A stretch of 64,000 nt of DNA, taken from Rebecca billardiae RCC1528 (lineage: Eukaryota > Protista > Haptophyta). The position numbers were made by a program, and so were the translations under genes. Positions 2,778-63,928 of this stretch are shown in pieces. Positions within the stretch are counted from its first letter, which is position 1. Each line of letters begins with the position of its first letter. Below the pieces are notes generated by a model. That model was not told the DNA's origin and did not search any database. It saw nothing but the letters and a program-made list of their open reading frames with translations. The stretch lies in contig OZ251223.1 of NCBI GenBank assembly GCA_965240325.2, positions 1,798,001 through 1,862,000 of the forward strand. Reading direction: 5' to 3'.

Positions 2778-3110
2778 TCCTGTCAGCTACAGAAGCGCTC
2801 GACGGCCGACGCGATGGGCACGGCGGTGCGAGGGACGCGGCCGCCCGCGCCCGCCAGGCTCAGCCTGGCTATCGTGCCCGTTCGCCTCCACCGGTCGTTA
2901 CCACCACCCGTGCTATCATAAATATCGCCATGTATGCGAACCGGCGCACCCATGTAACCGCCTGGCCGGAGAGTGTCGGCAGGGAAAAAAGTGCTTTCCC
3001 GAAGCTGCTCGAGGCGTGGCGGTGCATCCGGCTTTTGTGAGGCGCGAAACTCACGCCCGCGGACTCGCCGGCTGCTGATGATGCGCGACACCTGCGAGCG
3101 GCGGCGCGCG

Positions 3111-4850: not shown

Positions 4851-4885
<35 letters not shown>

Positions 4886-7874: not shown

Positions 7875-8671
7875 CGTCGCGCGGCCCAAGGAGAGACCAG
7901 CAAACCGGAGCGTTGCGCCAGCTGGACAAACTCGAAGGACCCAAGACCCAGGATCCTTGGACTTGTGGAGGGCCCTGGCGAGACCTGCACTCGGATCGGG
8001 GCCCTCTCTGGCTGTGCCGCTTTCGGCGCACGCCCGGCCGCGCGGCGGGCGACGTGTGCGCACGCCGTGCAGCTCGCGGCGCGTGCGCATTGGCTAGCTG
8101 GCACACGTCTCCCGACGCACAAGGCAAATGACCGCAGCTGGGATGCTCTTTCGCGCCGCAAGAACGCGTGCGAGGCCGGTCGCCGCGGCCGAGCGGCGTG
8201 GCCGTGCCGCCTGCACGCTGGGCGCCCATGGACGTGGCTTCGCCGCGCGCGCTGAGGCCGGCGAGCGTCGCGACCGACTTCCACGACGCGTGCGACGCGC
8301 CATCTGCCCGCTTCCTTGCCTGTGACGCACGTCTTCTGCGGGCAATGGCGACTCGCGCGCCCATGCGGCGGCGAAGCCGCCATCCGCCGCGCTTTGCCGT
8401 TGGACAGCGCGGAACATTTCTTTTTGAAAAGCGCCGAATCGCCGATCTGAAAAGACCGGAAGGCGTTTGTCCAGCTGGCGGCGCAACGCCCCTGAATGCG
8501 GGCCATGATCGGAATATCGGATGGCTTTTCTGGGAAACTTCAAACTTCGCACTGATGATCACCACACCGGCGACTTGGCCGAGAACTTGGGACCGGTCGG
8601 TGACGGCCGCGACGCACGCGATCAGGCGGCCGCAGGCCGCTCGCACGATAAGCTTCACCAACATTGCGCAT

Positions 8672-40204: not shown

Positions 40205-43200
40205 TCAGGCGTTGCTTCGTCGGCCGGTTGGCCCGACCTGACCGCGCGCCGGCAGTCCAGCGCCGCCGCGCGCAGGGGCCTCACGAGCTGTGGCCGGCGC
40301 CGTACTCGCTGTGCGCGGCTCGTCCGCCGAGCTCTCGCCGCCGCCGATGACATGGTAGTCGTACTGCTCGCGCCGGCGGTCGAGCGCGCGCGCGGCGCGG
40401 TTGAGCACGAGCACGGACGAGGTCGTCGCGACGGCGGCGGCGGCGAAGAGCAGCCAGCAGCCCGCCTCGAGGTGCGCGACGATGCCGAAGCAGCGCGGGT
40501 CCTCGTCCACAAAGTCGAGCGCGTACCGCGCGAGCAGCGCGTTGAGCTCGTCGCACCGCCCCTTGAGCACGAACTGCGAGAACTGCTCGATCTCGGTCAC
40601 GGCGACCAGCAGCGCGAGCACAAAGATGTCGACGCCCGACCACGCGTTCACCATCTGCGCGAGGACGTAGCCCGCGGACTGCGCGCGCAGCGGGAGCGGG
40701 ACGGCCCAGAGCAGCGCGACCAGCGGGGGCAGCGCGAGCGGCATCGCGAGGTGCACGAGGAAGAAGATGAACAGCTGCCACACCGAGCCGGCCGAGAGCG
40801 GCGCGTACCCGGCCGCCTCCGTGAGCTCGAGCCCGGCGCCGATCAGCGAGAAGCGCCTCACGCGCGCCTCCTCGCCGAGCACGGTGCCGGCGAGGCCGGT
40901 GAACTCGAAGGAGAAGGCGGTCGCGCTCGCGCCGAGCACGACGAGCGCGAAGGAGAGCGGCAGCCCCAGCAGCGCGAGCGCGAGCAGCGCGCGGTCGCGC
41001 GCGCTCTCGTGCGGCAGCGCGCGCGAGAGCGACGACCATTGCCGGTACGGTCCGGCCGCGGTCACGTGCGCCGGCGGCTCGAGCCGCTCCGCCGCGGGCA
41101 GCGAGGCCTGCGCGCGGCGCGCGTGCGAGCGCCGCCGCTCCTCCGTGGCGCGGTGGAACGCGAGCACGGTGTGCGAGAGCAGGATCGAGAAGAGCGTCGC
41201 CGCCATCAGCCCGTACAGCCCGAAGCGCGGCTCGGCGCGCACCGTGAGCGTGCCGGCGCTCAGCCCGCCCAGCCACTCGGCCGGCACCGCGACGCGCATG
41301 TAGAACGCGACGCTCATCATCTGCATGACCGAGACATCGATGAGGGACCACTTGCCGTACGTGTGCAGGAAGGCGAGCAGCCGCTCGCGGTGCAGGGCGG
41401 GCAGCCACTGCGGCGGCACCAGCCAGAGGCACAGCATCCCGCCCAGCTTGAGATACGGCCAGCCGCCCGAGAAGAAGGCAATCACAGCTGCGAGCGGGTA
41501 GGTGCCCGCTGCCCACATGTCCGCGATCGTGTTGTCGAGGGAGAAGGCGAAGAGCGGCGGCGGGGTGAGCACCAGCCCGAAGGGCGTCTCGACGCGCACG
41601 ACCACCTCCGCGCCCACGCTCACGTTCGCCCAGAGGAAGAGCGCAAAGTCGAGCACGATCAGCGCGGCCATCAGCGCGCCGAACCGCGGGCTGGCGGCCG
41701 CCAGGCTGGTCGTCCACGCGGGCTCGAGCGGCGTGGCGCTGCGGCTGCCGAGCGCGGGCGCGCGGCTGGCGGCCGGCGCGGGGAGCGCAGCGGTCGACGG
41801 CGTGGGCGCGCGACTGCCCACGCCACTGCGCGCAGTGCCTTCCGCGGGCGTGGGCGCGCGGCTGCCCACGCCGCTCTGCGGTGGCGTGCCCGATGGCGTG
41901 GGCGCGGCGCTGCCGACAATGCTGGCCCACAGGCCAGTGGCGGGCGTGGGCGCGCGGCTGCCCACGCCGCTCTGCGGTGGCGTGCCCGATGGCGTGGGCG
42001 CGGCGCTGCCGACAATGCTGGCCCACAGGCCAGTGGCGGGCGTGGGCGCGCGGCTGCCCACGCCGCTCTGCGGTGGCGTGCCCGATGGCGTGGGCGCGGC
42101 GCTGCCGACAATGCTGGCCCACAGGCCAGTGGCGGGCGTGGGCGCGCGGCCTGCCGCACGGCTCGCGCCCTCGTGGAGCGGCTGAGGCACCGCGGCTTGC
42201 TCCTCCTCGTCAGCGCCCTCGCCCGCTCGGCCCGCGCCGGCCGCCCTGCCGCCATCGGCCACGTCGCTGCCGCCGGCTGCCGCTGGCCTCAGCCAGCTGA
42301 GCAGCGCGCGCGCGCCTGGCAGCGCGCTCGCGCCCGAGCGCTCCAGCCAGGAGGGGGCGCCGCCGCCCATGACGTGCACGGTGACCGCGTCCGGCCGGAG
42401 CGGCGGCGCGCCCGGGGAGCTCAGCGCGCCGCCTGCGCCGCCCGCCGCGCCCGCGCGCGCGCCCGCGACTCCGCCGCCACCGCTCTCGACAGCCCGCGCG
42501 CGCGGCGCTGCCTCGATCGGCTTGTGCCCCGCGCGCCGCCAGCGCACCCACCAGCGCGCGTACCACGCGCTCCCGACGACGAGGGCGAGGCCGAGCGCGC
42601 CGATCGCCGCGAGCGTGCCGCCGAGCAGCCCCGCGTCCTCCGCGGCGCGCACCTCGCGCGCCTCCTCAGCCAGCTCGGGCACCGCCGTGCGCCGGCACTC
42701 GGCGCGCGCCTCGGCCAGCCTCCCCGCCACCCACTCGTTGAGCGGGCGCAGCAGCAGCTCCTGCATGCCGTACGCGAGCCCGTCGTTCAGCGCGGCGGTG
42801 AGGCCGGCGTCGGCGCTCGCGAGCGCGTCGGCGAGCGCGCCGAGGTCGAGCGGCTCGCCCGTCGCCGCCGCGCTGCCGCTGCCCTGCAGCTCTGACAGCC
42901 GCAGCGCCAGCTGCTCGACTCGCAGCCGCGCGGCGCTGAGGGTGAGCCCGCCGCGCGCGGCGCTGCCCAGCAGGCACTGCACGCCGTTGCCGTCGATCAG
43001 CGCGCCGACGCTCACGCCGAAGAGCTCGTCCTGCTCGACGAGCAGCTGCACCTCGTCCAGGTCGACGTGCAGCGCGCGCATCGTGCCGTTCGCGACGAAC
43101 GACGCGAGGATATCCGCGCCCATGCCCTCGTAGTCGACGGCGGCGCGCACGCCCGCGCGCAGCGGGCGGCCGCCGTCCGCGTCGCCGCCGAGCGTGAAGC

Positions 43201-46200
43201 TGGAGCTCAGGCTGGGCACGCCGGCCGCGCCGCCGCCGCCGTCGTCCACGCGCAGCAGCTGCGCCGCCGAGAGCGTGTCGACGTCGAGCAGCGCGCCGTC
43301 CGCCAGCACGACGTGCGCGCCGCCAAAGTCCGGGCCGAAGTCGAGCTCCTCGTCGAGCAGGACTCCGGGCAGCTGCACCGCGGCGCGCGCGCCGAGCGCA
43401 TACTCGAGGGCGGGCGCGATCAGCGCGTTCACGCCCACGACGCCGAGCTCGTCCAGCCGGCGGACCGCCTCGTCGACCAGCCACCACGCGCCCCAGTCGA
43501 TGTATGAGCCCGCGCCCGCCGAGGCGTCCCCGTCCGAGCCAGCCTGCAGCCGGCGCGCGCGCGCGCGCCGGCGCGCGCTCGCCTCGGCGCAGCTCTGCGT
43601 GCCGCCCGCGTCGCGCGCCGCCTGCTCGAGCGCGCCGCCGATGGGCGCGCGCGCGCGCTCGACCGAGTCGAGCAGCCCGCCGAGCTCGGCGAGGACGGCC
43701 GACGCGCGCGCGCTCGCGAGCGCGAGCGGCACGAGCGCGCGGTCCGCGGCCTCCATGAGCGCGGGCACCCAGCCGCTCGGCGCCGCGCCTGCCGCGCCCG
43801 CCGCCGTCAGCCGCAGCGTCCGGAACGTGCCACCCAGCTGCAGCGCGCGCACCGACACTCCCTCCAGCGTGCGCAGCGCGCAGCTCGGCTCCGCGTCGTT
43901 GGCAAGCAGCTCGCCCAGGGTGAGCTCGCGCGCGGCCAAGTCGTTCACCGCGACGAAGACCGTCGCGTTGAGCGCGAGGCGCTCGACCGTCGTGCGCGCC
44001 ACGAGCGTGCTCAGCTCGAGCGCGCCGCTCGAGTTGAGCAGCGCGCCGAGCAGGCCGCCCTCCTGCGCGCGCAGCCGCACGGCCAGCCGGATCTCGAGCT
44101 CGATCTCGCTGAACTCGACAGACGCGCGCACCGTCTGCGCCTGCGGGGGACTCACCTCGGCGAGCGCCACGCTGCGCAGCGAGTCCAGGCCGACGATCGA
44201 GGCGGAGGCGAGGCTGACCGACAGGCCGAGCGCGCCGCCGAGCTCGTCCGACTCTGAGACGAGCGGCACAGACAGGTCGGTCAGCTCGAGCCGCGCGCTG
44301 TCGCCGGCGAGCGTGCGCACCCACGTGGGGAGCGTTGACTCGAGCTCGCTCATCCCGCCGAAGATCTCGCCGAGCGCGAGCGCCGCGCTCAGCCCGAGCG
44401 TGTCGGGCACCGAGTCCGGCAGCTGCAGCAGCGACGGCAGCTCGGCCGAGGCGCACGCGCTGCCGTTGCTCAGGTTGCGCGCGAGGGCGAGCGCGTCCCG
44501 AAGCGCGCCGCCCAGCTGCGCGCGCGCCGGGCCCGCGAGCGCGCTCGCGAGCAGCTCGTTGGCGCCCACGCTCAGCTCGGCCGTCGCTACGCCGAGCAGC
44601 GCGTGCGTCGCGGCCGACAGCTCGGACCAGAGCGCGCCGCCATCGACGCCGCTGATCAGGGGCGCGTCGAGCGCACCGAGCGTCGCGTTGAGCCGCACGA
44701 TGCCGAACGCGGGCTCGTCCAGCGCGCCGAGCGCGCACGCGAGCACGCGCGACACCGGGTCGTCGACGAGCAGCTGCTCGAACGTGAGGTTGGACAGCAG
44801 CGACGGCACCACCGGCACGCTCACCGTCGCAGACGCGCCCACGTCGTGAACGCCCGCCGACACGACCGCGTCCTCAAACAGCGACACCTCCGTGCCGTCC
44901 CACAGCGACAACGACACCGACAGCTGCGCAGTGGCGCGCACGGCGCCCAGCTGCAGCTGCAGCTGCACCGACGTGCTGAGCACATCTGGGTCGATGCCCG
45001 ACAGGTTGGAGGCCAGCTCGGCGGCGGACGCGGGCTGCACGCGCAGGGCGCGCACGCTGTCGAGGCCGCTCACGTTCAGGCTGCGCACGGCGATGCTGGC
45101 GTTGAGCAGCCCGCCCAGGGGCACGCTCAGGGCGAGCGGCGGCAGCGCGTCTGGCACGATGGGCAGCGGCCCGGGCGCCACCGCCCGCACGAGCGCGCTC
45201 AGGTCGAGCGGCGCCTCGGGCGGCGCGACCAGCTCGTTGAGCACCTCGCCCAGCGAGCGCACCACGTCGAGCTCGGCCCACGCGTACGCCTCCGCGGCCG
45301 CCGGGGGTGCGCTCAGCGCCGACGTGGGCTGCGCGGGGCAGTCGGGCGGCTCTGAGGTGAGCCCTGCGCTCAGCTGCTCGAGCTGCGCCTGCAGCCACGC
45401 GTGCGCCGGGCCATCGACCGCTTGCGCGAGCAGCGCGAGCACGTCGGCCGTGAGCGAGGCGGTCGCGGCGCCGAGCAGCGCATTCGCCGCGCGCTGCAGC
45501 TCCGCAAAGAGAGGCCCGTCGATGCCGCCGAGCGCCGGCGCAGTGAGCGTGCCCACCGACGCGTTGAGCTGCACCACGCCCAGCGCGGACATGTCCACCG
45601 CGCCGAGCGCGCACGCCAGCACACGCGACACCGGATCGTCGACGAGCAGCTGTTCGAACGTGAGGTTGGACAGCAGCGACGGCACCACCGGCACGCTCAC
45701 CGTTGCAGACGCGCCCACATCGTGCACGCCCGCCGACACGACCGCGTCCTCAAACAGCGACACCTCCGTGCCGTCCCACAGCGACACCGACAGCGACAGC
45801 TGCGCGCTCACGTCCAGCTGCGCGACCTCGACAGCCGCGTGCAGCGAGGTGGCGAGCAGCTCGTCCGCAATACCTGACAGCTCGTCGCTCGACGCAGTGG
45901 CTGCCGGTGCAAGCTGCAGCCTGCGCACGCTGTCGAGGCCGCTGATGTTGAGCGCGCTGATGTTCACCGTCACGTTGCCCCACGCGCATGCCGAGACGGC
46001 CAGCGTGGTCGGAGCCATCGCCCCTGGCACCACGTCCAGCACGCCGCCCGGTGCGAGCAGCCGCGCCAGTGCGCCCAGGTCGAGCGTTCGATTCGGCGCG
46101 GCCACGAGGCTGCTGAGCTCCTCGCTCAGAGCCACGACAGCATCGACCTCGTGCCACGCGAGCGCATCCGGCGAGGGTGGCAGCGCGCTCACACTCGAAG

Positions 46201-55200: not shown

Positions 55201-58200
55201 CCGGGCAGTCGGTCGAGTTGTCAAACATAGCCACGAGCTGCGAGAGCTGCTCGTCGAGCATCGTGTGCACAGGCCCACCCAGCGCGGGCGCGAGCAGCGC
55301 CTGCAACCGCGAGGCCGTCACCAAGTCCAGCGCCGAGTTGACCATCGCGGTCACGCCCACCTCGAGCTCCGCCCACGCACGCCCGAGCAGACCGACTGTC
55401 GGAGCTGAGCCAAACGTGCTCACGCCGAGCTCGAGCGACCCCACCGACGCGTTGAGCTGCACCACACCCAGGGCGGAGGTGTCAAGCCCGCCCAGCGCGC
55501 ACGCTAGTACTCGGCTTGCCGGGTCGTCGACGAGCAGCTGCTCGAACGTGAGGTTGGACAGCAGCGACGGCACCACCGGCACGCTCACCGTCGCAGATAC
55601 GCCCATGTCGGGCACGCCAGCCGACACGACCGCGTCCTCAAACAGCGACACCTCCGTGCCGTCCCACAGCGACAGCGACACCGACAGCTGCGCGCTCACG
55701 TCCAGCTGCGCGAACTCGACAGCCGCGTGAAACGAGGTGGCGAGCAGCTCGGCTGCAACGTTGGACAGCTCGTCGGCAGTCGCAGTGGCTGCCGGTGCGA
55801 GCTGCAGCCCGGCCACGCTGTCGAGGCCGCTGATGTTGAGCGCGCTCAGCTGCACCGTGAGGTTGGCCACGCCCTCCAGCGGCAGCACCAGCGAGACGGC
55901 CGGGGCCAGCTGCGGCACCACGCCCAGCACGCCGCCGGGCACGAACACGCGCGTCAGAGCGTTCACGTCGAGCGTGGGGGGCGAGGATGAGAGCAGCTCG
56001 TCCAGCTTCTCGCTCAGCACTGCCACCGCCTCCACCTCGTGCCACGCCAGCGCCTCGGAGGATGGCGCCGGCAGCTGTGCAGCAGATGATGGCTGCGCAG
56101 GGCACTCGCCCGACTGTTGCCCTTGGCCAACAAGTCGAGAGAGTTGCTCATCCAACAGCGTGCGCACGGGCCCACCAAGCGCAGGCGCGATCAGCGCCAG
56201 CACGCCATCAGCTGTGATCACGCCGAGCCCTGCGTCGAGCATGGCGATGGCTGGAGCCGCCGCTTCTGCCCAAGCGCGGCCAGGCCAGCCGCTCTTCGCG
56301 GGCACGCCAAACGTGCCGATGCCGAGCTCGATCGCGCCCGCCGAGAAATTCAGCTGCGCCAAGCCGAGCCCGGCTGCGTCCACCGCGCCGAGCGCGCACG
56401 CCAGCACGCGCGTCACCGGATCGTCGACGAGCAGCTGCTCGAACGTGAGGTTGGACAGCAGCGACGGCACCACCGGCACGCTCACCGTCGCAGACGCGCC
56501 CACGTCGTGCACGCCCGCCGACACGACGGCGTCCTCGAACAGCGACAGCTCCGTGCCGTCCCACAAAACCGCAGACAAAGACAGCTGCGCGCTCACGTGC
56601 AGCTGTGCGGCATCGACAGCCACGTGGAGCGAGGTGGCGAGCAGCTCGTCGGCCATCGTCGCGAGCTCGCTGCTGGACGTAGCCACCGTGCCCGCCGGGG
56701 CGAGGAGCATGTTGCGGAGGCTGTCGAGCCCGCTCACGTTCATGGCGCTGACGTTCACCGTCACGTTGCCGAGGGAGCCCAACGGAAGAGTCAGCGTGAG
56801 GGGTGGCATCAAACGAGGCACCACGCCCAGCACGCCATCAGGCAAGAAGACGCGCGTCAGAGCGTTGACGTCGAGCGTGGGGGGCGAGGACGAGAGCAGC
56901 TCGTCTAGCTTGTCGCTCAGCACTGCCACCGCCTCCACCTCGTGCCACGCCAGCGCGCCGGGCGATGGCGGCGGCAGGCTTGCAGCGGACGACGGCTGCG
57001 CAGGACAGTCGACAGCACCCTCAAGCCAACCCGCACTCAGCACGAGCTGCTCGTCCAGCAGCGCGCGCAGCGGGCCACCCAGCACGGGCGAGAGCAGCGC
57101 CTGCGCCTCCGAGGCCGTCACCAGGCCCAGCCCCGCGTTGAGCAATGCGCTCATGCCCGCCTCCAACTCCGCCCACGCACGCCCGAGCCCGCCCGTCGGT
57201 GACGCCCAACCGGACGTGCTCACTCTGAGTTCGAGGCCTGCCAAAGAAGAGTTGAGCTGCACCACGCCCAGCGACGCCGAGTCCAGCCCGCCCAGCGCGC
57301 ACGCCAGCACACGCGACACCGGGTCGTCGACGAGCAGCTGCTCGAACGTGAGGTTGGACAGCAGCGACGGCACCACCGGCACGCTCACCGTCGCAGACAC
57401 GCCCACATCGTGCGCGCCCGCCGACACGACTGCGTCCTCAAACAGCGACACCTCCGTGCCGTCCCACAGCGACAACGACACCGAGAGCTGCGCGCTCACG
57501 TCCAGCTGCGCGACCTCGACAGCCGCGTGCAGCGAGGTGGCGAGCAGCTCGTCCGCAATACCTGACAGCTCGTCGCTCGATGCAGCTGCCATCTGCGCGG
57601 GTGCGAGCTGCAGCCCGGCCACGCTGTCCAGGCCACTGATGTTGAGCGCGCTCAGCTGCACCGTGAGGTTGGCCACGCCCTCCAGCGGCAGCACCAGCGA
57701 GACCGCTGGGGCCAGCTGCGGCACCACGCCCAGCACGCCGCCGGGCACGAACACGCGCGTCAGAGCGTTCACGTCGAGCATGGGGGGCGAGGATGAGAGC
57801 AGCTCGTCCAGCTTGTCGCTCAGCACTGCCACCGCCTCCACCTCGTGCCACGCCAGCGCGTTGGGCGATGGCGCCAGTGGGAGGCTCGCCGCGAGGGTCG
57901 GCTGAGCAGGGCAGTCACCAGCCTCCAGCTGCGAGAGCTGCTGGTCCAGCATCGAATGCACGGGCCCATCGAGCGCGGGTGTAAGCAGCGCCTGCACATC
58001 TGCAGTGGTGACCATGCTCAACACCGTGTTGAGCAAGGCCGTTGTGACCGCCTCGACTTCAGCCCACGCCTGCCCAAGCCAGCTATCCGTCGGAACCGCC
58101 GCAGTTGCACCGATGCCCAGCTCGAGCGACCCCACCGACGCGTTGAGCTGCACCACGCGCAGGGCGGAGGTGTCAAGCCCGCCCAGCGCGCACGCCAGCA

Positions 58201-61200
58201 CTCGGCTTGCCGGGTCGTCGACGAGCAGCTGCTCAAACGTGAGGTTGGACAGCAGCGACGGCACCACCGGCACGCTCACCGTCGCAGACGCGCCCACGTC
58301 GTGCGCGCCCGCCGACACGACCGCGTCCTCAAACAGCGACACCTCAGTGCCGTCCCACAACAACAGCGACACCGACAGCTGCGCGCTCACGTTGAGCTGC
58401 GCGACCTCGACCGCCGCGTGCAGCGAGGTGGCGAGCAGCTCGGCTGCAACGTTGGACAGCTCGTCGGCGGTCGCAGTGGCTGCGGGTGCGAGCTGCAGCC
58501 CGGCCAAGCTGTCCAGGCCGCTGATGTTTAGCGCGCGCAGCTGCACCGTGAGGTTGGCCACGCCCTCCAGCGGCAGCACCAGCGAGACGGTAGGGGCCAG
58601 CTGCGGCGCCACGCCCAGCACGCCGCCGGGCACCAACACGCGAGTAAAAGCGTTCACGTCGAGCGTGGGGGGCGAAGATGAGAGCAGCTCGTCCAGCTTC
58701 TCGCTCAGCACTGCCACCGCCTCCACCTCGTGCCACGCCAGCGCACCGGGCGATGACGACGGCAGCTGTGCAGCAGACGACGGCTGCGCTGGGCAGTCGG
58801 TCGAGTTGTCAAACATAGCCACGAGCTGCGCGAGCTGCTCGTCCAGCATCGTGAGCGCAGGCCCGCCCAGCGCGGGCGCGAGCAGCGCCTGCGCCTCCGA
58901 GGCCGTCGCCAAGTCCAGCGCCGAGTTGAGCATCGCGGTCACGCCTGGCTCGAGCTCCGCCCACGCACGCCCGAGCAGACCGACTGTCGGAGCTGAGCCA
59001 AACGTGCTCACGCCGAGCTCGAGCGACCCCACTGACGCGTTAAGCTGCACCACGCCCAGGGCGGAGGTGTCAAGCCCGCCGAGCGCGCACGCTAGTACTC
59101 GGCTTGCCGGGTCGTCGACGAGCAGCTGCTCGAACGTGAGGTTGGACAGCAGCGACGGCACCACCGGCACGCTCACCGTCGCAGACGCGCCCACGTCGTG
59201 CACGCCCGCCGACACGACCGCGTCCTCGAACAGCGACACCTCCGTGCCGTCCCACAAAACCGCAGACAAAGACAGGTGTGCGCTCACGCCCACCGAGGAC
59301 AACTCGACAGCCGCGTGCAGCGAGGTGGCGAGCAGCTCGTCCGCAATTCCTGCCAGCTCGTCGCTCGATGCAGCCGCCATCTGCGCGGGTGACAGATGCA
59401 GCCCGGCCACGCTGTCCAGGCCGCTGATGTTGAGCGCGCGCAGCTGCACGGTGAGGTTGGCCACGCCCTCCAGCGGCAGCACCAGCGAGACGGCTGGGGC
59501 CAGCTGCGGCACCACGCCCAGCACGCCGCCGGGCACGAGGACGCGCGTCAGAGCGTTCACGTCGAGCGTGGGGGGCGAGGATGAGAGCAGCTCGTCCAGC
59601 TTGTCGCTCAGCACTGCCACCGCCTCCACCTCGTGCCACGCCAGCGCCTCGGAGGATGGTAGCGGCAGGGGTGCTGCGGATGATGGCTGCGCAGGGCACT
59701 TGCCCTCCCCTTCGGCGATCGCGCCGAGCCCTTCGAGCTGCTCGTTGAGCATCGCGTGCACGGTGCCGTCCAACAAATCCCCAAGCGATGCGTACAGCTG
59801 TGGGGCCAGCTCCGCGGCAGCCACACCCAGCAGGGCGTTCACCGCGGCCTCCGCAGCTGCCCACACGGCCCCGCTCAAGCCGCCGACGAGCGGCGCGGCA
59901 AAGCTCCCGGCAGTGATATTGAGCTGCACCACGCCCAGGGCGGAGGTGTCCAGCCCGCCCAGCGCGCACGCCAGCACTCGGCTTGCCGGGGCGTCGACGA
60001 GCAGCTGCTCGAACGTGAGGTTGGACAGCAGCGACGGCACCACCGGCACGCTCACCGTCGCAGATACGCCCACGTCGTGCACGCCCGCCGACACGACCGC
60101 GTCCTCAAACAGCGACACCTCCGTGCCGTCCCACAAAACCGCAGACAAAGACAGCTGCGCGCTCACGCCCACCGAGGACAACTCGACAGCCGCGTGCAGC
60201 GAGGTGGCGAGCAGCTCGTCCGCAATTCCTGACAGCTCGTCGCTCGATGCAGCCGCCGTCTGCGCGGGTGACAGATGCAGCCCGGCCACGCTGTCCAGGC
60301 CGCTGATGTTGAGCGCGCTCAGCTGCACCGTGAGGTTGGCCACGCCCTCCAGCGGCAGCACCAGCGAGACGGTAGGGGCCAGCTGCGGCACCACGCCCAG
60401 CACGCCGCCGGGCACGAACACGCGCGTCAGAGCGTTCACGTCGAGCGTGGGGGGCGAGGACGAGAGCAGCTCGTCCAGCTTCTCGCTCAGCACTGCCACC
60501 GCCTCCACCTCGTGCCACGCGAGCGCGTCGGGCGATGGCGGCGGCAGGCTCGCCGCGGCCGACGGCTGCGCGGGGCAGACGGCGGCCGTGTCCGCCATCT
60601 CGAGCAGGCTGCCGAGCTGCTCGTCGAGCAAGGCGTGCACGGGGCCGTCGAGCACAGCGTGGAGCAGCGCGTCGATCGCGCCTGTCGACGCCCCAAAGGC
60701 GGCACTCGCGACCGCCGCCAGAGCGCTGTCCAACTCCGGCCACGGCGCGAGCACGCCCAGCGTGGGGCTTGAGAGGAGCCCGACGCTCGCGTTGAGCTGT
60801 GCCACGCCGAGCGTCGCCGTGTCCACGCCTCGGAGCGCGCAAGCCAGCAGGCGGCCCGGCTCCGCCGCCTGCTCGCCGCGTGGCACGAGCTGCTCGAGCG
60901 TGAGGTTGGCCAGCAGCTCGGGCAGCATTGGCACGCTCACCGTCGCTGAGAGCCCGAGGTCGTGCAGCGAGAGGCTCAGCGGCTGCTCGGCCGTCGTGCG
61001 AGCGCGCAGGCCATCGAGGAGAGCCAGCGAGTCGTCGGGCCCCACGTAGCGCACGCCGACCTCCACGCCCAGCTCGACGTCGAGCCGGTCGAGCAGCGCC
61101 TCGAGGTGCAAGGAGGTGCGCTGCACGTCTGCGCTGAGCGCGCCGAGCGCCGCGCTCGACGACATGGCCGCTGGCATCAGCTGCAGGGCGCGCACGCTGT

Positions 61201-63928
61201 CGAGGCCGCGAACGGCCACGGACTGCACGTCGATGGTGACGTTGATGCTGCCCACACCCGCTTCGGCGAGCAGCGGCAGCTCCAGCGAGAGCGGCTCGAC
61301 GAGCGCGGACGGCAAGAGCGAGAGCGCCTCCTCGGGCGCGAGGAGGGCGCGCACGAGCGCGCCAGCGTCGAGCGCGCCGCCGTCCGCGAGCAGCGCGTCG
61401 AGCTCGGTGGCGAGCTTGCGCACGAGCGGGACCTCGGCCCATCCGAGTGCGTCCGCGGGCGGCGCTGGCGTGGGGTCGCGCGGCGCGGGCGGCTCTGCCG
61501 CCAGACACGCGCCGCCCATACCCGCCGCGTCGAGGGCCACGCCGAGTGCGCTCGCGTGCAGCGCGCGCAGCGCCTCGTCAGCGACCTCGTGCACCGGCCC
61601 GCGCAGCGCCGCGCGCACGAGCGCGAGGATGGCCGGGCTGGACTCGGCGAGAAGCACGCCCATCACGTCGTTGACAACGTCGCGCATCAGCACCCAGAGC
61701 GCGGACGGCTGCAGCTCGAGCGTCGGCGCGTCGAGCGTGCCCACGTCGGCGCGCAGCGAGACGAGGCCGAGCGCGTCCGCGTCGAGCGACAGCAGCGCGC
61801 ACGCGAGCGTGCGCGCGAGCGCGCTGTCGTCGAGCAGCTGCGCGGTGCTCAGGTTGGCGAGGCGGCCCTCGAGCACGGGGACGCTGATGGCGATTTCGGC
61901 GGTGACGCCCACCACGTCCATCGTCACAAACCCGCCGTCGAGCACCTCCAGCTCGCCGAGGAGGCCGCCCGCCGGCAGCACGGAGACGGTCAAGTTCGAA
62001 GCGAGACGCAGCCGCTCGAGCTGCACCGAGAGGACGAGCGAGGAGGGCTGCAGCGCGGCGGGCACGGGCTCGCCGAGGCCGCTCGCGACGGCGTCCGAGG
62101 CGGGCGCGATGCTCAGCGCGGCGATCGTGTCCAGCCCCGTCACGTTGAGCGTGGTGATGTCCACGGACACGTTGGCCACGTGCAGCAGCGGCAGCGCGAG
62201 GCCGAGCAGCGGCGGCAGCTGCGCGGGGATCACCTCGACGCCGCCATCCGCGCGGCCGCTCAGCTCGCGCGCGGCGTGGTTGAGCGCGGTCAGCGCCGCG
62301 CTCCCGGCGCCGAGGCGCTCGTTCAGCGCCGCCGACGCGCGCGCGACCACGGGCACCGCCTCCCATCGCAGCGCGTCCGCTGGCGACGGCGGTGGCGGAG
62401 GCGGCGGCGGCACCGCAGCTCGCACGTCGCACTCCACGCGCCCGCCCGCCGCCACGCCGTCGAGCAGCTCGCCGAGCAGCGGCCCCACGTTGCTGCTGAG
62501 CAGCGAGATGATGGCGCTCGAGAGCCCGGCGGCGAGCACCCCTTCGCCGGGGGCGAGGACCACGCCGAGCATGTTGTTCATCAGCTCGATGAACGACGCC
62601 ATCAGCTCGTCCGCCCCGCCAGAGATGCGGACCTCGAGCCCGCTGAGCGGCGCCATGCTCGCGTTGAGGAAGCCCAGGCTGCCCGCGTCGACCGAGCGCA
62701 GCGCGCACGCCGCGAGGCGCGAGAGCGCGTCGTTGTCGAGCAGCTGGTCGCCCGCCAGCCGCTCGATCACCTCGGGCAGCACGGGGAGGTTTAGATCGAA
62801 CGCGAGGTTGATCTCGCTCAGCTCGACCTCGAGCGTCAGCGGCACGCACAGCCTGGCGGCCTCGCCCAGCATGCCGGACATGTCCACGTGGGTCGCGAGC
62901 GAGATGCCCATGCGCAAGCCCTCGAGGCCAACCTCGAACGCGAGGCCAGCCCGAGACTCGGGCATCGGCTGCAGCACGCGCAGGTGCGAGAGGGAGTCGA
63001 TCCCGCCGAGCGACATCGACGTCACGTTGATCCTCAGCCCGAGCATGCCGAAGATGTCGGTGCCGTCGCCAGCGTCGAGATTGGCGAAGGTGATGTTGTC
63101 GAGGCCGAGCGCGCCGAGCGTCGACGGGCCGAGCGTGAGCTCCGGCGCCAAGCCCAGCACGGGGATCGCGGTGCGCACGAGCGTGGGCAGGCTGAGCCGG
63201 AGCGGGTCGTTCAGCGCGGCGTTCAACGCAGCGGCCGTGTTGGCGACGGCCGGCACGTCCACCCATGCGTACGCCGTGGGCGAGGCGGGTGGGGCGAGCG
63301 ACGCCGCGTCCGCCCCGAGGGCCTGCCCCAGCGTCGCGCTCAGGTCGCCGAACGCCAAGCCCGCGAAGAGCCCCTCCACGCCGGCGCACAGCTCCGGCCC
63401 GATGCTCCCCGTGATCTGGTCGGCAAAGTAGTTGGCGAAGAGGCTGACGAGGAAGTTGAAGGGCAGCCCCGTCAGCTGGAGGGTGTCGGTGGCCAGGTTC
63501 GCCGCGCATTGCGTCAGCGCCAAGCCCGTGGGCGGTCCACCGCCGGCGTCCTCGACGAGCTCGAGGCCGAGCGCAAACGAGGAGTCAGCAATGACCAGGT
63601 TGAGCGTGCCATCGCCCGCGAGGGAGCCGCCGTTGTCGAAGCTGAAGCCGCCGGCGCACGTGATAGTCAGCCCGGTCAAATCAACCTGAAAGCCCCGCCC
63701 ACCGTTCGTCGACTCGCTCGTCAGCTGGTCGATCCCGAGCGAGCCGCACACAAAGTTGTTCAGCCCAAAGGTGAAATCCCCGTCGCCAGAGACGGGGAGC
63801 TCGTCCAGCGTGAGCTCGAAGCTGGCGAGCGCGTCTGCGAGATCTACATTCGTCGACGGGCACGCACCGCGCACGCCGACGGGGACGCTCACCCAGAGCG
63901 CGACGGCGGCCGCGGCGAGAACGCGCAT
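40205..63928 (-). CDS. Giant 7907-aa membrane protein: signal peptide, BPI/TULIP-like N-domain, ~23 tandem ~300-aa repeats, TM, disordered linker, two-repeat PqiA/LetA-type membrane domain
   Basis: Uninterrupted 23.7-kb ORF. MRVLAAAAVALWVSVPVGVRG signal; TQCAANL...FNFLVSLFANYF...ELCAGVEGL (BPI-N-like Cys-helix-Cys); TM at ~42560-42630; FSLDNTIADMW...FFSGGWPYLKL, YGKWSLIDV (~41335-41360) and VNAWSGVDIFVLALL (~40610-40652). Confidence 0.9.
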   Translation of the reverse strand: MRVLAAAAVALWVSVPVGVRGACPSTNVDLADALASFELTLDELPVSGDGDFTFGLNNFVCGSLGIDQLTSESTNGGRGFQVDLTGLTITCAGGFSFDNGGSLAGDGTLNLVIADSSFALGLELVEDAGGGPPTGLALTQCAANLATDTLQLTGLPFNFLVSLFANYFADQITGSIGPELCAGVEGLFAGLAFGDLSATLGQALGADAASLAPPASPTAYAWVDVPAVANTAAALNAALNDPLRLSLPTLVRTAIPVLGLAPELTLGPSTLGALGLDNITFANLDAGDGTDIFGMLGLRINVTSMSLGGIDSLSHLRVLQPMPESRAGLAFEVGLEGLRMGISLATHVDMSGMLGEAARLCVPLTLEVELSEINLAFDLNLPVLPEVIERLAGDQLLDNDALSRLAACALRSVDAGSLGFLNASMAPLSGLEVRISGGADELMASFIELMNNMLGVVLAPGEGVLAAGLSSAIISLLSSNVGPLLGELLDGVAAGGRVECDVRAAVPPPPPPPPSPADALRWEAVPVVARASAALNERLGAGSAALTALNHAARELSGRADGGVEVIPAQLPPLLGLALPLLHVANVSVDITTLNVTGLDTIAALSIAPASDAVASGLGEPVPAALQPSSLVLSVQLERLRLASNLTVSVLPAGGLLGELEVLDGGFVTMDVVGVTAEIAISVPVLEGRLANLSTAQLLDDSALARTLACALLSLDADALGLVSLRADVGTLDAPTLELQPSALWVLMRDVVNDVMGVLLAESSPAILALVRAALRGPVHEVADEALRALHASALGVALDAAGMGGACLAAEPPAPRDPTPAPPADALGWAEVPLVRKLATELDALLADGGALDAGALVRALLAPEEALSLLPSALVEPLSLELPLLAEAGVGSINVTIDVQSVAVRGLDSVRALQLMPAAMSSSAALGALSADVQRTSLHLEALLDRLDVELGVEVGVRYVGPDDSLALLDGLRARTTAEQPLSLSLHDLGLSATVSVPMLPELLANLTLEQLVPRGEQAAEPGRLLACALRGVDTATLGVAQLNASVGLLSSPTLGVLAPWPELDSALAAVASAAFGASTGAIDALLHAVLDGPVHALLDEQLGSLLEMADTAAVCPAQPSAAASLPPPSPDALAWHEVEAVAVLSEKLDELLSSSPPTLDVNALTRVFVPGGVLGVVPQLAPTVSLVLPLEGVANLTVQLSALNISGLDSVAGLHLSPAQTAAASSDELSGIADELLATSLHAAVELSSVGVSAQLSLSAVLWDGTEVSLFEDAVVSAGVHDVGVSATVSVPVVPSLLSNLTFEQLLVDAPASRVLACALGGLDTSALGVVQLNITAGSFAAPLVGGLSGAVWAAAEAAVNALLGVAAAELAPQLYASLGDLLDGTVHAMLNEQLEGLGAIAEGEGKCPAQPSSAAPLPLPSSEALAWHEVEAVAVLSDKLDELLSSSPPTLDVNALTRVLVPGGVLGVVPQLAPAVSLVLPLEGVANLTVQLRALNISGLDSVAGLHLSPAQMAAASSDELAGIADELLATSLHAAVELSSVGVSAHLSLSAVLWDGTEVSLFEDAVVSAGVHDVGASATVSVPVVPSLLSNLTFEQLLVDDPASRVLACALGGLDTSALGVVQLNASVGSLELGVSTFGSAPTVGLLGRAWAELEPGVTAMLNSALDLATASEAQALLAPALGGPALTMLDEQLAQLVAMFDNSTDCPAQPSSAAQLPSSSPGALAWHEVEAVAVLSEKLDELLSSSPPTLDVNAFTRVLVPGGVLGVAPQLAPTVSLVLPLEGVANLTVQLRALNISGLDSLAGLQLAPAATATADELSNVAAELLATSLHAAVEVAQLNVSAQLSVSLLLWDGTEVSLFEDAVVSAGAHDVGASATVSVPVVPSLLSNLTFEQLLVDDPASRVLACALGGLDTSALRVVQLNASVGSLELGIGATAAVPTDSWLGQAWAEVEAVTTALLNTVLSMVTTADVQALLTPALDGPVHSMLDQQLSQLEAGDCPAQPTLAASLPLAPSPNALAWHEVEAVAVLSDKLDELLSSSPPMLDVNALTRVFVPGGVLGVVPQLAPAVSLVLPLEGVANLTVQLSALNISGLDSVAGLQLAPAQMAAASSDELSGIADELLATSLHAAVEVAQLDVSAQLSVSLSLWDGTEVSLFEDAVVSAGAHDVGVSATVSVPVVPSLLSNLTFEQLLVDDPVSRVLACALGGLDSASLGVVQLNSSLAGLELRVSTSGWASPTGGLGRAWAELEAGMSALLNAGLGLVTASEAQALLSPVLGGPLRALLDEQLVLSAGWLEGAVDCPAQPSSAASLPPPSPGALAWHEVEAVAVLSDKLDELLSSSPPTLDVNALTRVFLPDGVLGVVPRLMPPLTLTLPLGSLGNVTVNVSAMNVSGLDSLRNMLLAPAGTVATSSSELATMADELLATSLHVAVDAAQLHVSAQLSLSAVLWDGTELSLFEDAVVSAGVHDVGASATVSVPVVPSLLSNLTFEQLLVDDPVTRVLACALGAVDAAGLGLAQLNFSAGAIELGIGTFGVPAKSGWPGRAWAEAAAPAIAMLDAGLGVITADGVLALIAPALGGPVRTLLDEQLSRLVGQGQQSGECPAQPSSAAQLPAPSSEALAWHEVEAVAVLSEKLDELLSSSPPTLDVNALTRVFVPGGVLGVVPQLAPAVSLVLPLEGVANLTVQLSALNISGLDSVAGLQLAPAATATADELSNVAAELLATSFHAAVEFAQLDVSAQLSVSLSLWDGTEVSLFEDAVVSAGVPDMGVSATVSVPVVPSLLSNLTFEQLLVDDPASRVLACALGGLDTSALGVVQLNASVGSLELGVSTFGSAPTVGLLGRAWAELEVGVTAMVNSALDLVTASRLQALLAPALGGPVHTMLDEQLSQLVAMFDNSTDCPAQPSSAAQLPAPSLDALAWHEVEAVAVLSEKLDELLSSSPPTLDVNALTRVLVPGGVLGVVPQLAPAVSLVLPLEGVANLTMQLSALNISGLDSLAGLQLSPAQTAAASSAELSGIVDELLATSLHAAVELSSVGVSAQLSVSLLLWDGTEVSLFEDAVVSAGMHDVGASATVSVPVVPSLLSNLTFEQLLVDAPASRVLACALGGLDTSALGVVQLNASVGSLELGIGTLGLLTWAGWPGRAWAELEPGVTAMLNSAPGLLTASKAQALLSPALGGPAITMLDEQLAQVVAMFDDSTDCSVQPSSAAQLPLPSSEALAWHEVEAVAVLSEKLDELLSSSPPTLDVNALTRVFVPGGVLGVVPQLAPAVSLVLPLEGVANLTVQLSALNISGLDSLAGLHLSPAQTAAASSAELSDIAKELLASSLHAAVELSSVGVSAQLSVSLLLWDGTEVSLFEDAVVSAGVHDVGVSATVSVPVVPSLLSNLTFEQLLVDAPVSRVLACALGGLDTSALGVVQLNASVGSLELGMSTFGSAPTVGLLGRAWAELEPGVAAMLNSALDLATASEAQALLAPALGGPVHTMLDEQLAQVVAMFDNSTDCPAQPSSAAQLPAPSPDALAWHEVEAVAVLSEKLDELLSSSPPTLDVNALTRVFVPGGVLGVVPQLAPAVSLVLPLEGVANLTVQLRALNISGLDSLAGLQLSPAQTAAASSDELSHVAEELLATSFHAAVEVAQLDVHAQLSVSLSLWDGTEVSLFEDAVVSAGVHDVGASATVSVPVVPSLLSNLTFEQLLVDDPASRVLACALGGLDTSALGVVQLNASLGLLELGVSTFGSAPTVDLLGRAWAELEPGVAAMVNSALDLATASEAQALLAPALGGPALTMLDEQLAQLVAMFDNSTDCPAQPSSAAQLPAPSSEALAWHEVEAVAVLIDKLDELLSPSPPTLDVSALTRVFVPGGVLGVVPQLAPTVSLVLPLGGVANLTVQLRALNISGLDSVVGLQLAPAATASSDELSSIADELLATSLHAAVEVAQLDVSAQLSVSLSLWDGTEVSLFEDAVVSAGAHDVGASATVSVPVVPSLLSNLTFEQLLVDDPASRVLACALGGLDTSALGVVQLNASVGSLELGVSTFGSAPTVGLLGRAWAELEVGVAAMLNSALDVATASQLQALLAPALGGPALTMLDEQLAQLVAMFDNSTDCPAQPSSAAQLPAPSSEAFAWHEVEAVAVLSEKLDELLSSSPPTLDVNALTRVFVPGGVLGVVPQLAPAVSLVLPLEGVANLTVQLSALNISGLDSLTGLQLAPAATASSDELSGIADELLATSLHAAVEVAQLDVSAQLSVSLSLWDGTEVSLFEDAVVSAGAHDVGASATVSVPVVPSLLSNLTFEQLLVDAPASRVLACALGGLDTSALGVVQLNASVGSLVIGMSTFGSAPTVDLLGRAWAELEPGVAAMLNSALDVATASQLQALLAPALGGPALTMLDEQLAQLVAMFDNSTDCPAQPSSAAQLPAPSSGALAWHEVEAVAVLSEKLGELLSSSPPTLDVNALTRVFVPGGVLGVVPQLAPAVSLVLPLEGVANLTVQLSALNISGLDSLTGLQLAPAATASSDELSGIADELLATSLHAAVEVAQLDVSAQLSVSLSLWDGTEVSLFEDAAVSAGVHDVGASATVSVPVVPSLLSNLTFEQLLVDDPASRVLACALGAVDTSALGVVQLNASVGSLELGIGTPGLLARTGWPGPAWAELEPGVTAMLNSALDLATASEAQALLKPVLGGPALTMLDEQLSQFAAELGMLGDCHAQPAVVVDALPAVPGALAWHEVEAVAVLSETLDELLSSSPPTLDVNALTRVFVPGGVLGVVPQLAPAVSLVLPLEGVANLTVQLRALNISGLDSLAGLQLSPAQTAAASSVGLSDIADELLASSLHAAVELSSVGVSAQLSVSVSLWDGTEVSLFEDAVVSAGMHDVGVSATVSVPVVPSLLSNLTFEQLLVDDPASRVLACALGAVDTSALGVVQLNITLGALEAAIGSTNAVSDTGWLAGLWSEVEAAAVAIANTALEELTTSNVPALLLRELDKLVLPVFNQQLAQHVDRLDQAGTCPSQPTSAASLPAPSPDALAWHEVEAVAVLREKLDELLSSSPPTLDVNALTRVFVPGGVLGVVPQLAPAVSLVLPLEGVANLTVQLRALNISGLDSLTGLQLAPAATATADELSNVAAELLATSLHAAVEVAHLNVSAQLSVSVSLWDGTEVSLFEDAVVSAGVHDVGASATVSVPVVPSLLSNLTFEQLLVDDPASRVLACALGGLDTSALGVVQLNASVGSLVIGMSTFGSAAAVGLLGRAWAELEPGVTAMVNSALDVATASQLQALLAPALGGPALTMLDEQLLQLLGWCEEVGDCPAQPYSTPDLPAPSSEALAWHEVEAVAVLREKLDELLSSSPPTLDVNALTRVFVPGGVLGVVPKLAPATSLPIALCALGNLTVNVSFVNISGLDSVAGLQLAPAATATGDELSNVADELLASSLHAAVEVARLNVSAQLSVSVSLWDGTEVSLFEDAVVSAGVHDVGASATVSVPVVPSLLSNLTFEQLLVDDPASRVLACALGALDTTSLGVVQLNVTLGSLELGIGTLGVAQTSDQLGRAWAEAGAGALALLNAGLGLLTAPEVQALLAPVLDRWAHATLDEQLAQVLEWCGEAGDCPAQPTSAASLPPPSSEALAWHEVETVVSLSEKLDELVSSSPPALDVNAMTRLFAPGGSLGVVPQLAPAISLPIALCALGNLTVNVSFVNISGLDSVRGLQLAPAATATGDELSNVAAELLASSLHAAVEVAQLNVSAQLSVSVSLWDGNEVSLFEDAVVSAGVHDVGASATVSVPVVPSLLSNLTFEQLLVDDPASRVLACALGALDTASLGVVQLNVSIGVLSVGVGAFVTDVLSAALGSAWAEVEEAALALAQFAADELLGDARSLLARVLDGPVHALLDERMSQLVGGCDEAADCPAQPSSSVSALPPSPDALAWHEVDAVVALSEELSSLVAAPNRTLDLGALARLLAPGGVLDVVPGAMAPTTLAVSACAWGNVTVNISALNISGLDSVRRLQLAPAATASSDELSGIADELLATSLHAAVEVAQLDVSAQLSLSVSLWDGTEVSLFEDAVVSAGVHDVGASATVSVPVVPSLLSNLTFEQLLVDDPVSRVLACALGAVDMSALGVVQLNASVGTLTAPALGGIDGPLFAELQRAANALLGAATASLTADVLALLAQAVDGPAHAWLQAQLEQLSAGLTSEPPDCPAQPTSALSAPPAAAEAYAWAELDVVRSLGEVLNELVAPPEAPLDLSALVRAVAPGPLPIVPDALPPLALSVPLGGLLNASIAVRSLNVSGLDSVRALRVQPASAAELASNLSGIDPDVLSTSVQLQLQLGAVRATAQLSVSLSLWDGTEVSLFEDAVVSAGVHDVGASATVSVPVVPSLLSNLTFEQLLVDDPVSRVLACALGALDEPAFGIVRLNATLGALDAPLISGVDGGALWSELSAATHALLGVATAELSVGANELLASALAGPARAQLGGALRDALALARNLSNGSACASAELPSLLQLPDSVPDTLGLSAALALGEIFGGMSELESTLPTWVRTLAGDSARLELTDLSVPLVSESDELGGALGLSVSLASASIVGLDSLRSVALAEVSPPQAQTVRASVEFSEIELEIRLAVRLRAQEGGLLGALLNSSGALELSTLVARTTVERLALNATVFVAVNDLAARELTLGELLANDAEPSCALRTLEGVSVRALQLGGTFRTLRLTAAGAAGAAPSGWVPALMEAADRALVPLALASARASAVLAELGGLLDSVERARAPIGGALEQAARDAGGTQSCAEASARRRARARRLQAGSDGDASAGAGSYIDWGAWWLVDEAVRRLDELGVVGVNALIAPALEYALGARAAVQLPGVLLDEELDFGPDFGGAHVVLADGALLDVDTLSAAQLLRVDDGGGGAAGVPSLSSSFTLGGDADGGRPLRAGVRAAVDYEGMGADILASFVANGTMRALHVDLDEVQLLVEQDELFGVSVGALIDGNGVQCLLGSAARGGLTLSAARLRVEQLALRLSELQGSGSAAATGEPLDLGALADALASADAGLTAALNDGLAYGMQELLLRPLNEWVAGRLAEARAECRRTAVPELAEEAREVRAAEDAGLLGGTLAAIGALGLALVVGSAWYARWWVRWRRAGHKPIEAAPRARAVESGGGGVAGARAGAAGGAGGALSSPGAPPLRPDAVTVHVMGGGAPSWLERSGASALPGARALLSWLRPAAAGGSDVADGGRAAGAGRAGEGADEEEQAAVPQPLHEGASRAAGRAPTPATGLWASIVGSAAPTPSGTPPQSGVGSRAPTPATGLWASIVGSAAPTPSGTPPQSGVGSRAPTPATGLWASIVGSAAPTPSGTPPQSGVGSRAPTPAEGTARSGVGSRAPTPSTAALPAPAASRAPALGSRSATPLEPAWTTSLAAASPRFGALMAALIVLDFALFLWANVSVGAEVVVRVETPFGLVLTPPPLFAFSLDNTIADMWAAGTYPLAAVIAFFSGGWPYLKLGGMLCLWLVPPQWLPALHRERLLAFLHTYGKWSLIDVSVMQMMSVAFYMRVAVPAEWLGGLSAGTLTVRAEPRFGLYGLMAATLFSILLSHTVLAFHRATEERRRSHARRAQASLPAAERLEPPAHVTAAGPYRQWSSLSRALPHESARDRALLALALLGLPLSFALVVLGASATAFSFEFTGLAGTVLGEEARVRRFSLIGAGLELTEAAGYAPLSAGSVWQLFIFFLVHLAMPLALPPLVALLWAVPLPLRAQSAGYVLAQMVNAWSGVDIFVLALLVAVTEIEQFSQFVLKGRCDELNALLARYALDFVDEDPRCFGIVAHLEAGCWLLFAAAAVATTSSVLVLNRAARALDRRREQYDYHVIGGGESSADEPRTASTAPATAREAPARGGAGLPARGQVGPTGRRSNA
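41844..42150 (-). repeat. Three near-perfect 96-bp (32-aa) coding repeats in the linker of the giant protein
   Basis: RAPTPATGLWASIVGSAAPTPSGTPPQSGVGS x3; the marker gctggcccac falls at 41921, 42017 and 42113. Confidence 0.95.
44700..60560 (-). repeat. Coding macrosatellite: 18 units of roughly 880-905 bp (many exactly 897)
   Basis: The invariant block aacgtgaggttggacagcagcgacggcaccaccggcacgctcaccgt (SVPVVPSLLSNLTF) recurs 18 times by my count; WHEV recurs 17 times. Confidence 0.95.

Follow-up and report, generated by a model that had tools for sequence, protein, structure and literature searches.

A 64,000-nucleotide (nt) stretch of the genome of the haptophyte Rebecca billardiae RCC1528 (assembly GCA_965240325.2, contig OZ251223.1, positions 1,798,001 to 1,862,000), hereafter the window, harbours a gene for a protein of 7,907 amino acid residues in which a BPI-type N-terminal domain and 23 TULIP-like modules are predicted to be joined, through a single transmembrane (TM) anchor, to a PqiA/LetA-like membrane domain. 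On the strength of its sequence, of predicted structures and of the analogy with characterised systems, we favour with moderate confidence the view that this protein is a lipid transporter, with a BPI domain at its tip, TULIP modules acting in series and a LetA-like base, that moves lipids over long distances. Fusions between TULIP and PqiA domains represent a eukaryotic class of lipid-transfer proteins that has just been recognised, and a single member has been studied. The protein described here suggests that this class includes chains of many TULIP modules, not merely one or two.

The protein is laid out in the order signal peptide, N-domain, 23 modules (M01-M23), TM anchor, linker, PqiA/LetA domain and short C-terminal tail. 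Its features are as follows, in window coordinates.

40205..63928, minus strand: whole coding sequence, 7,907 residues and stop codon, no intron needed (no internal stop; GC content at third codon positions 0.90)
63863..63928, minus strand: signal-peptide-like N-terminus, residues 1-22 (sequence; same leader in homologues)
63329..63862, minus strand: N-domain, residues 23-200, predicted BPI/LBP/CETP N-terminal-type TULIP domain (family profile, Cys alignment, VIA-align)
60575..63328, minus strand: distal diverged modules M01-M03, residues 201-1118 (alignment; tree for M01 and M02)
44453..60574, minus strand: amplified core M04-M21, residues 1119-6492, 18 predicted TULIP-like modules of ~300 residues with 4-7 sequons each
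42695..44452, minus strand: proximal diverged modules M22-M23, residues 6493-7078 (alignment; tree)
42563..42634, minus strand: predicted single TM anchor, residues 7099-7122, followed by a basic stretch (hydropathy, sequence; equivalent in nearly all homologues)
41690..42562, minus strand: low-complexity linker, probably cytosolic, residues 7123-7413, ~290 residues (sequence)
40394..41689, minus strand: PqiA/LetA-like domain, residues 7414-7845, two halves of four hydrophobic segments (Pfam, profile, hydropathy)
41336..41356, minus strand: G-K-W-S-L-I-D, residues 7525-7531, motif of the first half
40622..40645, minus strand: A-W-S-G-V-D-I-F, residues 7762-7769, motif-like sequence of the second half

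The open frame and its BPI-type N-terminal domain

Read on the minus strand from 63928 to 40205, the gene is one open frame of 7,907 codons (23.7 kb). It has no internal stop, as against 18-211 stops in the five other frames over the same span, and its GC contents at codon positions 1/2/3 (0.75/0.50/0.90, in a genome of ~70% GC) are those of a real coding frame. The ATG lies only 72 nt from the end of the window, and no in-frame stop occurs within those 72 nt; the start codon was placed where it is because the signal peptide and the N-termini of the homologues agree, not because of an upstream stop. As in the homologues, the protein begins with a hydrophobic leader followed by a Cys residue, Cys23. 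N-x-S/T sequons number 104 in total, with 3-7 in each of M01-M21, two in M22 and one in M23, and the module array has a net charge of -546. With its leader, sequons and membrane anchor, the protein is predicted to be a type-I membrane glycoprotein. The single frame of 7,907 codons, the signal peptide and the sequons of the modules had all been pointed out in a first-pass annotation, made by a model from the DNA letters alone, and each of them was borne out by the present analysis.

The N-domain is, according to its profile and its predicted structure, a true BPI-family TULIP domain. A profile that includes the homologues matches the PDB sequences of BPI (E 1e-17), LBP (2e-16) and CETP (1e-5). 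Taken as a single sequence, the domain scores 11.7 bits against Pfam LBP_BPI_CETP, under the threshold of 28.8, and its homologue P0009 passes that threshold with 30 bits. The two conserved Cys columns of the profile coincide with the two Cys residues of BPI: C141 and C181 align with the disulfide C135-C175 of BPI, and both pairs are spaced by 40 residues. The AlphaFold2 (AF2) model of residues 1-808 has a predicted local distance difference test score (pLDDT) of 80, with values of ~85-95 across residues 30-190, and displays the long helix wrapped by a strongly curved beta-sheet that is expected of such a domain. VIA-align comparisons of model residues 29-197 gave Z-scores of 13.3 with LBP, 11.9 with JHBP, 11.5 with CETP and 10.5 with Takeout; Der p 7 also aligns, within the range of 10.5-11.9. 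BPI aligns over the N-domain and M01 together (Z 12.2). The BPI-like N-domain and Cys pattern proposed in the first-pass annotation are well founded on these grounds.

Sequence, predicted fold and expansion of the modules

Self-BLAST and alignment were used to delimit the 23 modules, of 288-310 residues each, which span residues 201-7078. Every module has an invariant pair of Cys residues ~98 residues apart, the second of which directly precedes a Pro/Ser/Ala-rich linker. Modules M04-M21 share 63-96% nucleotide identity with one another, most pairs being at 70-92% and no two copies identical. Identity to this core is 47-57% for M01-M03 and ~47% for M22-M23, and these five diverged modules have just 42-57% nucleotide identity to any other module. 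An arrangement of ~23 modules as 3 + 18 + 2, each with a Cys pair, had been read from the translation beforehand; self-BLAST, alignment and nucleotide identities yield exactly that arrangement.

The fold of the modules was assigned from predicted structure only. The best AF2 model of two core modules reached a pLDDT of 77 and a predicted template modelling score of 0.60. Foldseek comparison of this module-pair model with the PDB, a check recommended in the first-pass annotation for paired repeats, placed LBP (E 5e-7) and BPI (1e-6) on top, with a probability of ~1.0, and the top matches were all TULIP proteins, namely LBP, BPI, CETP, JHBP, Der f 7 and Takeout. Mmm1 and Mdm12 were also among the structural matches. 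A VIA-align search over 48,161 representative chains, which is independent of Foldseek, was led by Takeout, BBP and CETP with coverage of the whole domain, and the whole module aligned with Takeout at Z 7.3 over 192 of 216 residues. AFDB clusters, the ESM Atlas and single-module language-model features pointed to the BPI, JHBP, Grp7-allergen and fibroin-P25 families. Going by these predictions, the modules are very probably TULIP-like. Strand-face hydropathy, taken as a proxy for a cavity in the modules, was uninformative.

Several observations nevertheless weigh against this assignment and against the transport reading built on it. The five AF2 models of the module pair differ widely, with pLDDT values of 53-77. 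The Z-scores of the modules are middling, 7.3 at best, with START/AHSA1-like folds next at Z 5-6, and VIA-align itself carries the caveat that a Z-score below 8 can mean merely a common arrangement. Searches of Pfam and of the PDB with profiles of 23 and 103 sequences gave no match between the module sequences and TULIP families, and hhalign detected no similarity between the modules and the N-domain of the same protein. Finally, the inter-module linkers in the models comprise ~24 unstructured residues, with pLDDT values below 50 over 8 residues.

It might be argued from the missing sequence match and from the unrelated helix-grip folds close behind in Z-score that the modules represent another helix-plus-curved-sheet fold with a different role. 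We hold this to be highly improbable, as the PDB, the AFDB, the Atlas and the language-model features all rank TULIP families first, with whole-domain coverage. Furthermore, in single-module relatives the module sits where the second BPI barrel is found in the '2xBPI' form of TUPA-like proteins, the class of fusions introduced above. The ApiTULIP domain of that class likewise has no sequence similarity to known TULIP families (10.64898/2026.09.11.750981).

The first-pass idea of a continuous hydrophobic conduit, of perhaps 100 nm or more, is not supported by the models, in which the stretches that join the modules lack structure. We also considered that the protein might be a polyprotein cleaved into single lipid carriers, like the polyprotein allergens of nematodes, and we rejected this for the core, whose linkers are devoid of dibasic sites. 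The sole R-x-[KR]-R motif of the ectodomain is found at residues 6790-6793 (window 43550-43561), in an Arg-rich stretch of the M22/M23 linker. Kexin/furin-type cleavage at this site, if used, would split the protein into an N-terminal product, with the N-domain and M01-M22, and a C-terminal one that comprises M23, the anchor and PqiA.

Three consecutive junctions have a feature of their own. At M17/M18, M18/M19 and M19/M20 (residues 5302/5384, 5601/5683 and 5899/5981; window 45986-48025), one module has an additional Cys 6-7 residues ahead of its terminal Cys, and the following module has a counterpart at its position 76. Neither of these Cys residues is found in any other module. They could form inter-module disulfides fixing neighbouring modules, and the three junctions may derive from one or two duplication events.

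The core modules are under purifying selection, with ratios of non-synonymous to synonymous substitutions (dN/dS) of 0.43-0.58, and of 0.43 for the beta-sheet part. Divergence is unevenly distributed along the repeat: positions 20-222, which comprise helices and the beta-sheet, have a dS of 0.24 and a dN of 0.10, and positions 223-300, which correspond to the C-terminal helices, are far more diverged, with a dS of 0.74 and a dN of 0.43. This contrast at synonymous sites points to partial gene conversion, which homogenises only part of each repeat, and not to selection alone.

The module profile retrieved 60 relatives from among 1.84 billion representative proteins, 24 of which have a homologous C-terminal PqiA domain. 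In several of them Pfam recognises an N-terminal LBP_BPI_CETP domain and a C-terminal PqiA domain, and in nearly all complete relatives a signal peptide precedes the modules and a TM anchor follows the last of them. The survey of repeat number among homologues that the first-pass annotation had called for, conducted with an iterated module hidden Markov model (HMM), revealed 1-6 modules per relative, as against 23 here. There is one module in proteins of ~1,030-1,095 residues, four in many proteins of ~2,000-2,300 residues, five in Diacronema lutheri and six in one protein of 2,871 residues. The closest named relative is D. lutheri KAG8461045.1 (P0061), whose PqiA domain is 48% identical. A search among proteins of 280-890 residues retrieved no relative, and a metagenome locus scan gave pattern matches, none of which was confirmed.

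In a maximum likelihood tree of the modules, M01 groups with the first modules of the relatives, M02 with the second, M22 with the penultimate and M23 with the last ones; the tip pair and the base pair are orthologous to modules of relatives having 3-5 modules. By contrast with this positional grouping of the end modules, M04-M21 form a single clade (support 100/99). Taken together, these groupings indicate that the 18 core modules arose by lineage-specific amplification of one middle module, with the tip and the base apparently remaining orthologous.

Such an expansion raises the question of whether the array was over-extended by mis-assembly of the repeats, or whether the locus is not expressed as one protein. 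No relative was found with more than six modules, and no giant one turned up among the proteins of 4,350-13,800 residues searched with the PqiA region. However, the relatives come mostly from short-read assemblies, which would break long arrays and are thus expected to miss them. Moreover, each copy in the array is distinguishable because no two modules are identical, even the most similar ones differing at 4% of positions or more, the frame stays open across 23.7 kb, and both its codon-position GC contents and dN/dS values below 1 indicate selection on it. An artefact or a dead gene is in our opinion very unlikely indeed.

Alternatively, only the terminal TULIP domains might handle lipid, the 18 core modules serving as a glycosylated acidic stalk or glycocalyx element, which would fix the height or shield the surface, or as an adhesin-like fibre. 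Amplification of just a middle module between orthologous tip and base modules is compatible with this possibility, and so are the very acidic character of the array and its wealth of sequons, the Pro/Ser-rich linkers and the much greater divergence of the C-terminal helical third of the core modules. However, the beta-sheet part of the core is under purifying selection, and the core keeps both the predicted TULIP-like fold and the Cys pair of the end modules; a plain spacer would need no folded 300-residue domain of the lipid-binding type. We consider a stalk unlikely, though not negligible, and continue to favour lipid transport involving the whole series of modules.

The PqiA/LetA-like base and its proposed orientation

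The C-terminal domain matches Pfam PF04403 (PqiA) with 46.2 bits, for a cut-off of 23.8 (E 5.8e-12), and a profile built from 19 family members matches the sequence of the solved E. coli LetA (YebS, 9n8w) with an E-value of 5.6e-9, in both cases over two stretches. Hydropathy, from which the number of TM segments was deduced, reveals eight peaks arranged as 4+4, and both halves match the PqiA model. In the first half, GKWSLID aligns with 361-GRWSM-psi-D-psi-F-369 of LetA (9n8w). K7526 and D7531 do not vary among the 19 aligned family members, and the ninth position of the motif is occupied by Ser here, instead of Phe. The Ser and Asp residues of the GRWSM motif belong to a polar network in LetA, and deep mutational scanning established the functional importance of this network (PMC13017536).

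No zinc ribbons are present, as residues 7100-7907 include just four Cys and no CXXC motif. Because eukaryotic LetA-like proteins without zinc ribbons have been reported in the LetA study (PMC13017536), this absence marks the eukaryotic branch and does not exclude membership of the PqiA/LetA family. The first-pass annotation had described a TM segment, a linker and two PqiA-type halves (GKWSLID, AWSGVD) without zinc ribbons, which agrees on every point with these results, and the test of the C-terminus against the PqiA HMM that it had suggested is the Pfam match given above. The first PqiA half, which bears the motif, aligns best with the C-terminal module of LetA, and the second half with the N-terminal module. 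The order of the halves may be swapped relative to E. coli LetA, or these alignments may reflect cross-matching of two homologous halves.

The low-complexity linker that leads from the anchor to PqiA is much shorter in the homologues. Tandem Repeats Finder detected in it a 96-nt tandem repeat at 41844-42160, with 3.3 copies and 99% matches, whose unit encodes 32 residues rich in Ser, Thr and Pro. Judging from the signal peptide and from the one anchor with its trailing basic stretch, the TULIP chain would be extracytosolic, on the side of the beta-sheet face of the PqiA domain, and the linker cytosolic. The proposed orientation fits with that basic stretch and with the presence of a sequon in the first PqiA loop.

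Known systems and proposed working

CETP/BPI proteins with a PqiA domain as their C-terminal anchor have been noted in protists and amoebae (Wong & Levine 2017, PMC5507252). More recently, a preprint of September 2026 named the TUPA-like proteins (TUPALs), which occur in many eukaryotic clades and in which PqiA is preceded or followed by one or two BPI-like domains (10.64898/2026.09.11.750981). The R. billardiae protein has the combination that characterises TUPALs, a PqiA-like and a TULIP-like domain in one chain. Like TUPALs and PfTUPA, it associates a LetA/PqiA-type domain of 2x4 TM segments devoid of zinc ribbons with TULIP/BPI-like domains, putatively extracytosolic in the giant protein, and its N-terminal BPI-like arrangement is that of the non-apicomplexan '2xBPI' form. 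It differs from the described TUPALs in having not one or two BPI-like domains but 24 domains of the TULIP type (1 + 23) in 7,907 residues, and from PfTUPA, whose only TULIP domain, ApiTULIP, comes after PqiA in the chain. The malaria parasite requires PfTUPA to recycle lipids from its digestive vacuole, where membranes accumulate when the protein is lost (10.64898/2026.09.11.750981). By analogy, the function of the giant protein is most likely that of the TUPAL class.

In full-text searches of the literature, only the two studies cited above (PMC5507252 and 10.64898/2026.09.11.750981) linked TULIP/BPI domains with PqiA, and neither describes long arrays; nor did we find any account of members with 4-6 modules, of end modules that are orthologous by position or of a protein with 23 modules. 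The first-pass claim that the architecture was undescribed does not hold for the basic BPI+PqiA fusion, and it appears to hold for the scale. The 23-module scale thus seems undescribed, and the TULIP+PqiA fusion itself is known.

D. lutheri KAG8461045.1 and the environmental proteins P0002-P0004 and P0026 are of the same family, with the same order of domains and with orthologous first, second, penultimate and last modules. They have 4-6 modules as against 23, and the cytosolic linker is much longer in the giant protein. The bacterial systems LetAB and PqiABC of E. coli (9n8w; PMC13017536) also combine a LetA domain with a GRWSM-type motif and an elongated extracytoplasmic lipid carrier whose length varies with the number of repeats. 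However, their MCE rings are hexameric and belong to a separate partner, whereas the putative carrier described here is a fused, monomeric TULIP chain that is eukaryotic, predicted to be glycosylated and linked to a domain without zinc ribbons. LetA loads lipids into LetB, and eukaryotic LetA-like proteins are fused to extracytoplasmic domains (PMC13017536). The fused TULIP chain would then take the place of the MCE partner of LetA/PqiA, an analogy already made in the first-pass annotation and now drawn in the literature.

Other likenesses are more partial. The N-domain resembles BPI, LBP and CETP in its profile, predicted fold and disulfide, and the N-domain and M01 align over both BPI barrels, with a Pro-rich linker between the barrels. 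Those proteins are soluble, with two barrels in ~450 residues, whereas the giant protein is predicted to attach 24 barrels to a transporter, and the sequences of its later modules no longer resemble theirs. The ERMES complex (Mmm1-Mdm12-Mdm34) and the SMP assemblies of E-Syt proteins also have TULIP-type domains in series, bridging two membranes. Nevertheless, they reside in the cytosol, are assembled from separate subunits, comprise just 2-3 domains and lack a fused transporter.

BPI and LBP bind lipopolysaccharide, and many haptophytes eat bacteria. As BPI and LBP are the best matches of the N-domain and the closest named relative is from a haptophyte, the protein might be a multivalent binder of bacterial lipopolysaccharide or other foreign lipids, for defence or prey capture by a mixotrophic alga, with PqiA mainly an anchor or a sink. 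A recognition role of this kind appears improbable, since the whole family has conserved the link to a LetA-type transporter whose motif is intact, and since the only studied member of the class moves membrane lipids.

We therefore return to lipid transport, which might operate as follows. The chain would extend into the lumen or outside the cell, the beta-sheet face of PqiA lying on that side too, and its tip domains would engage a distant lipid source or acceptor. Lipids would travel along the serial TULIP modules, either through a docked bridge or by a hand-over relay on short linkers, and the base module would hand them to the PqiA domain or take them from it. The PqiA domain, which would begin from the cytosolic side as LetA does and have its first loop facing the chain, would insert lipids into the bilayer or extract them from it, a role proposed for both LetA and PfTUPA. 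The conservation of the ends and the amplification of the middle suggest that the number of modules might set the reach. A TULIP barrel is ~6-7 nm long in the BPI crystal, so that 24 barrels would measure roughly 150 nm if extended.

It is tempting to speculate that the 24 TULIP domains dock head to tail as a defined lipid bridge of ~150 nm, the longest known in a single chain, its length being set by the number of modules, just as that of LetB depends on how many MCE rings it has. Such a bridge might link the membrane of the alga to its scale layer, to prey or vacuole content, or to another membrane, and the 1-6-23 range of module numbers would then represent a molecular ruler for distance. 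Fixed contacts between modules are hinted at by the paired extra Cys residues at three consecutive junctions. We regard this more specific proposal as doubtful.

In this class, the ends of the chain (tip and base modules) appear to be conserved and its middle open to amplification, up to 23 modules in one alga. Should the chain indeed carry lipid, nature would here have set up an experiment on whether TULIP domains can act in long series and whether length is tuned to cellular distance, as in the bacterial MCE tunnels. In addition, near-identical modules of 300 residues would be convenient units for biochemical and structural work.

Elsewhere in the window, two neighbouring open frames on the plus strand code for an AAA+ chaperone of the ClpC/ClpB type (2973-5504) and for a protein in which phosphatase, P-loop kinase and RNA ligase domains are fused (8168-11053). 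The best named match of the ClpC-like protein is from Chrysotila carterae (55% identity), and its environmental matches reach up to 77%.

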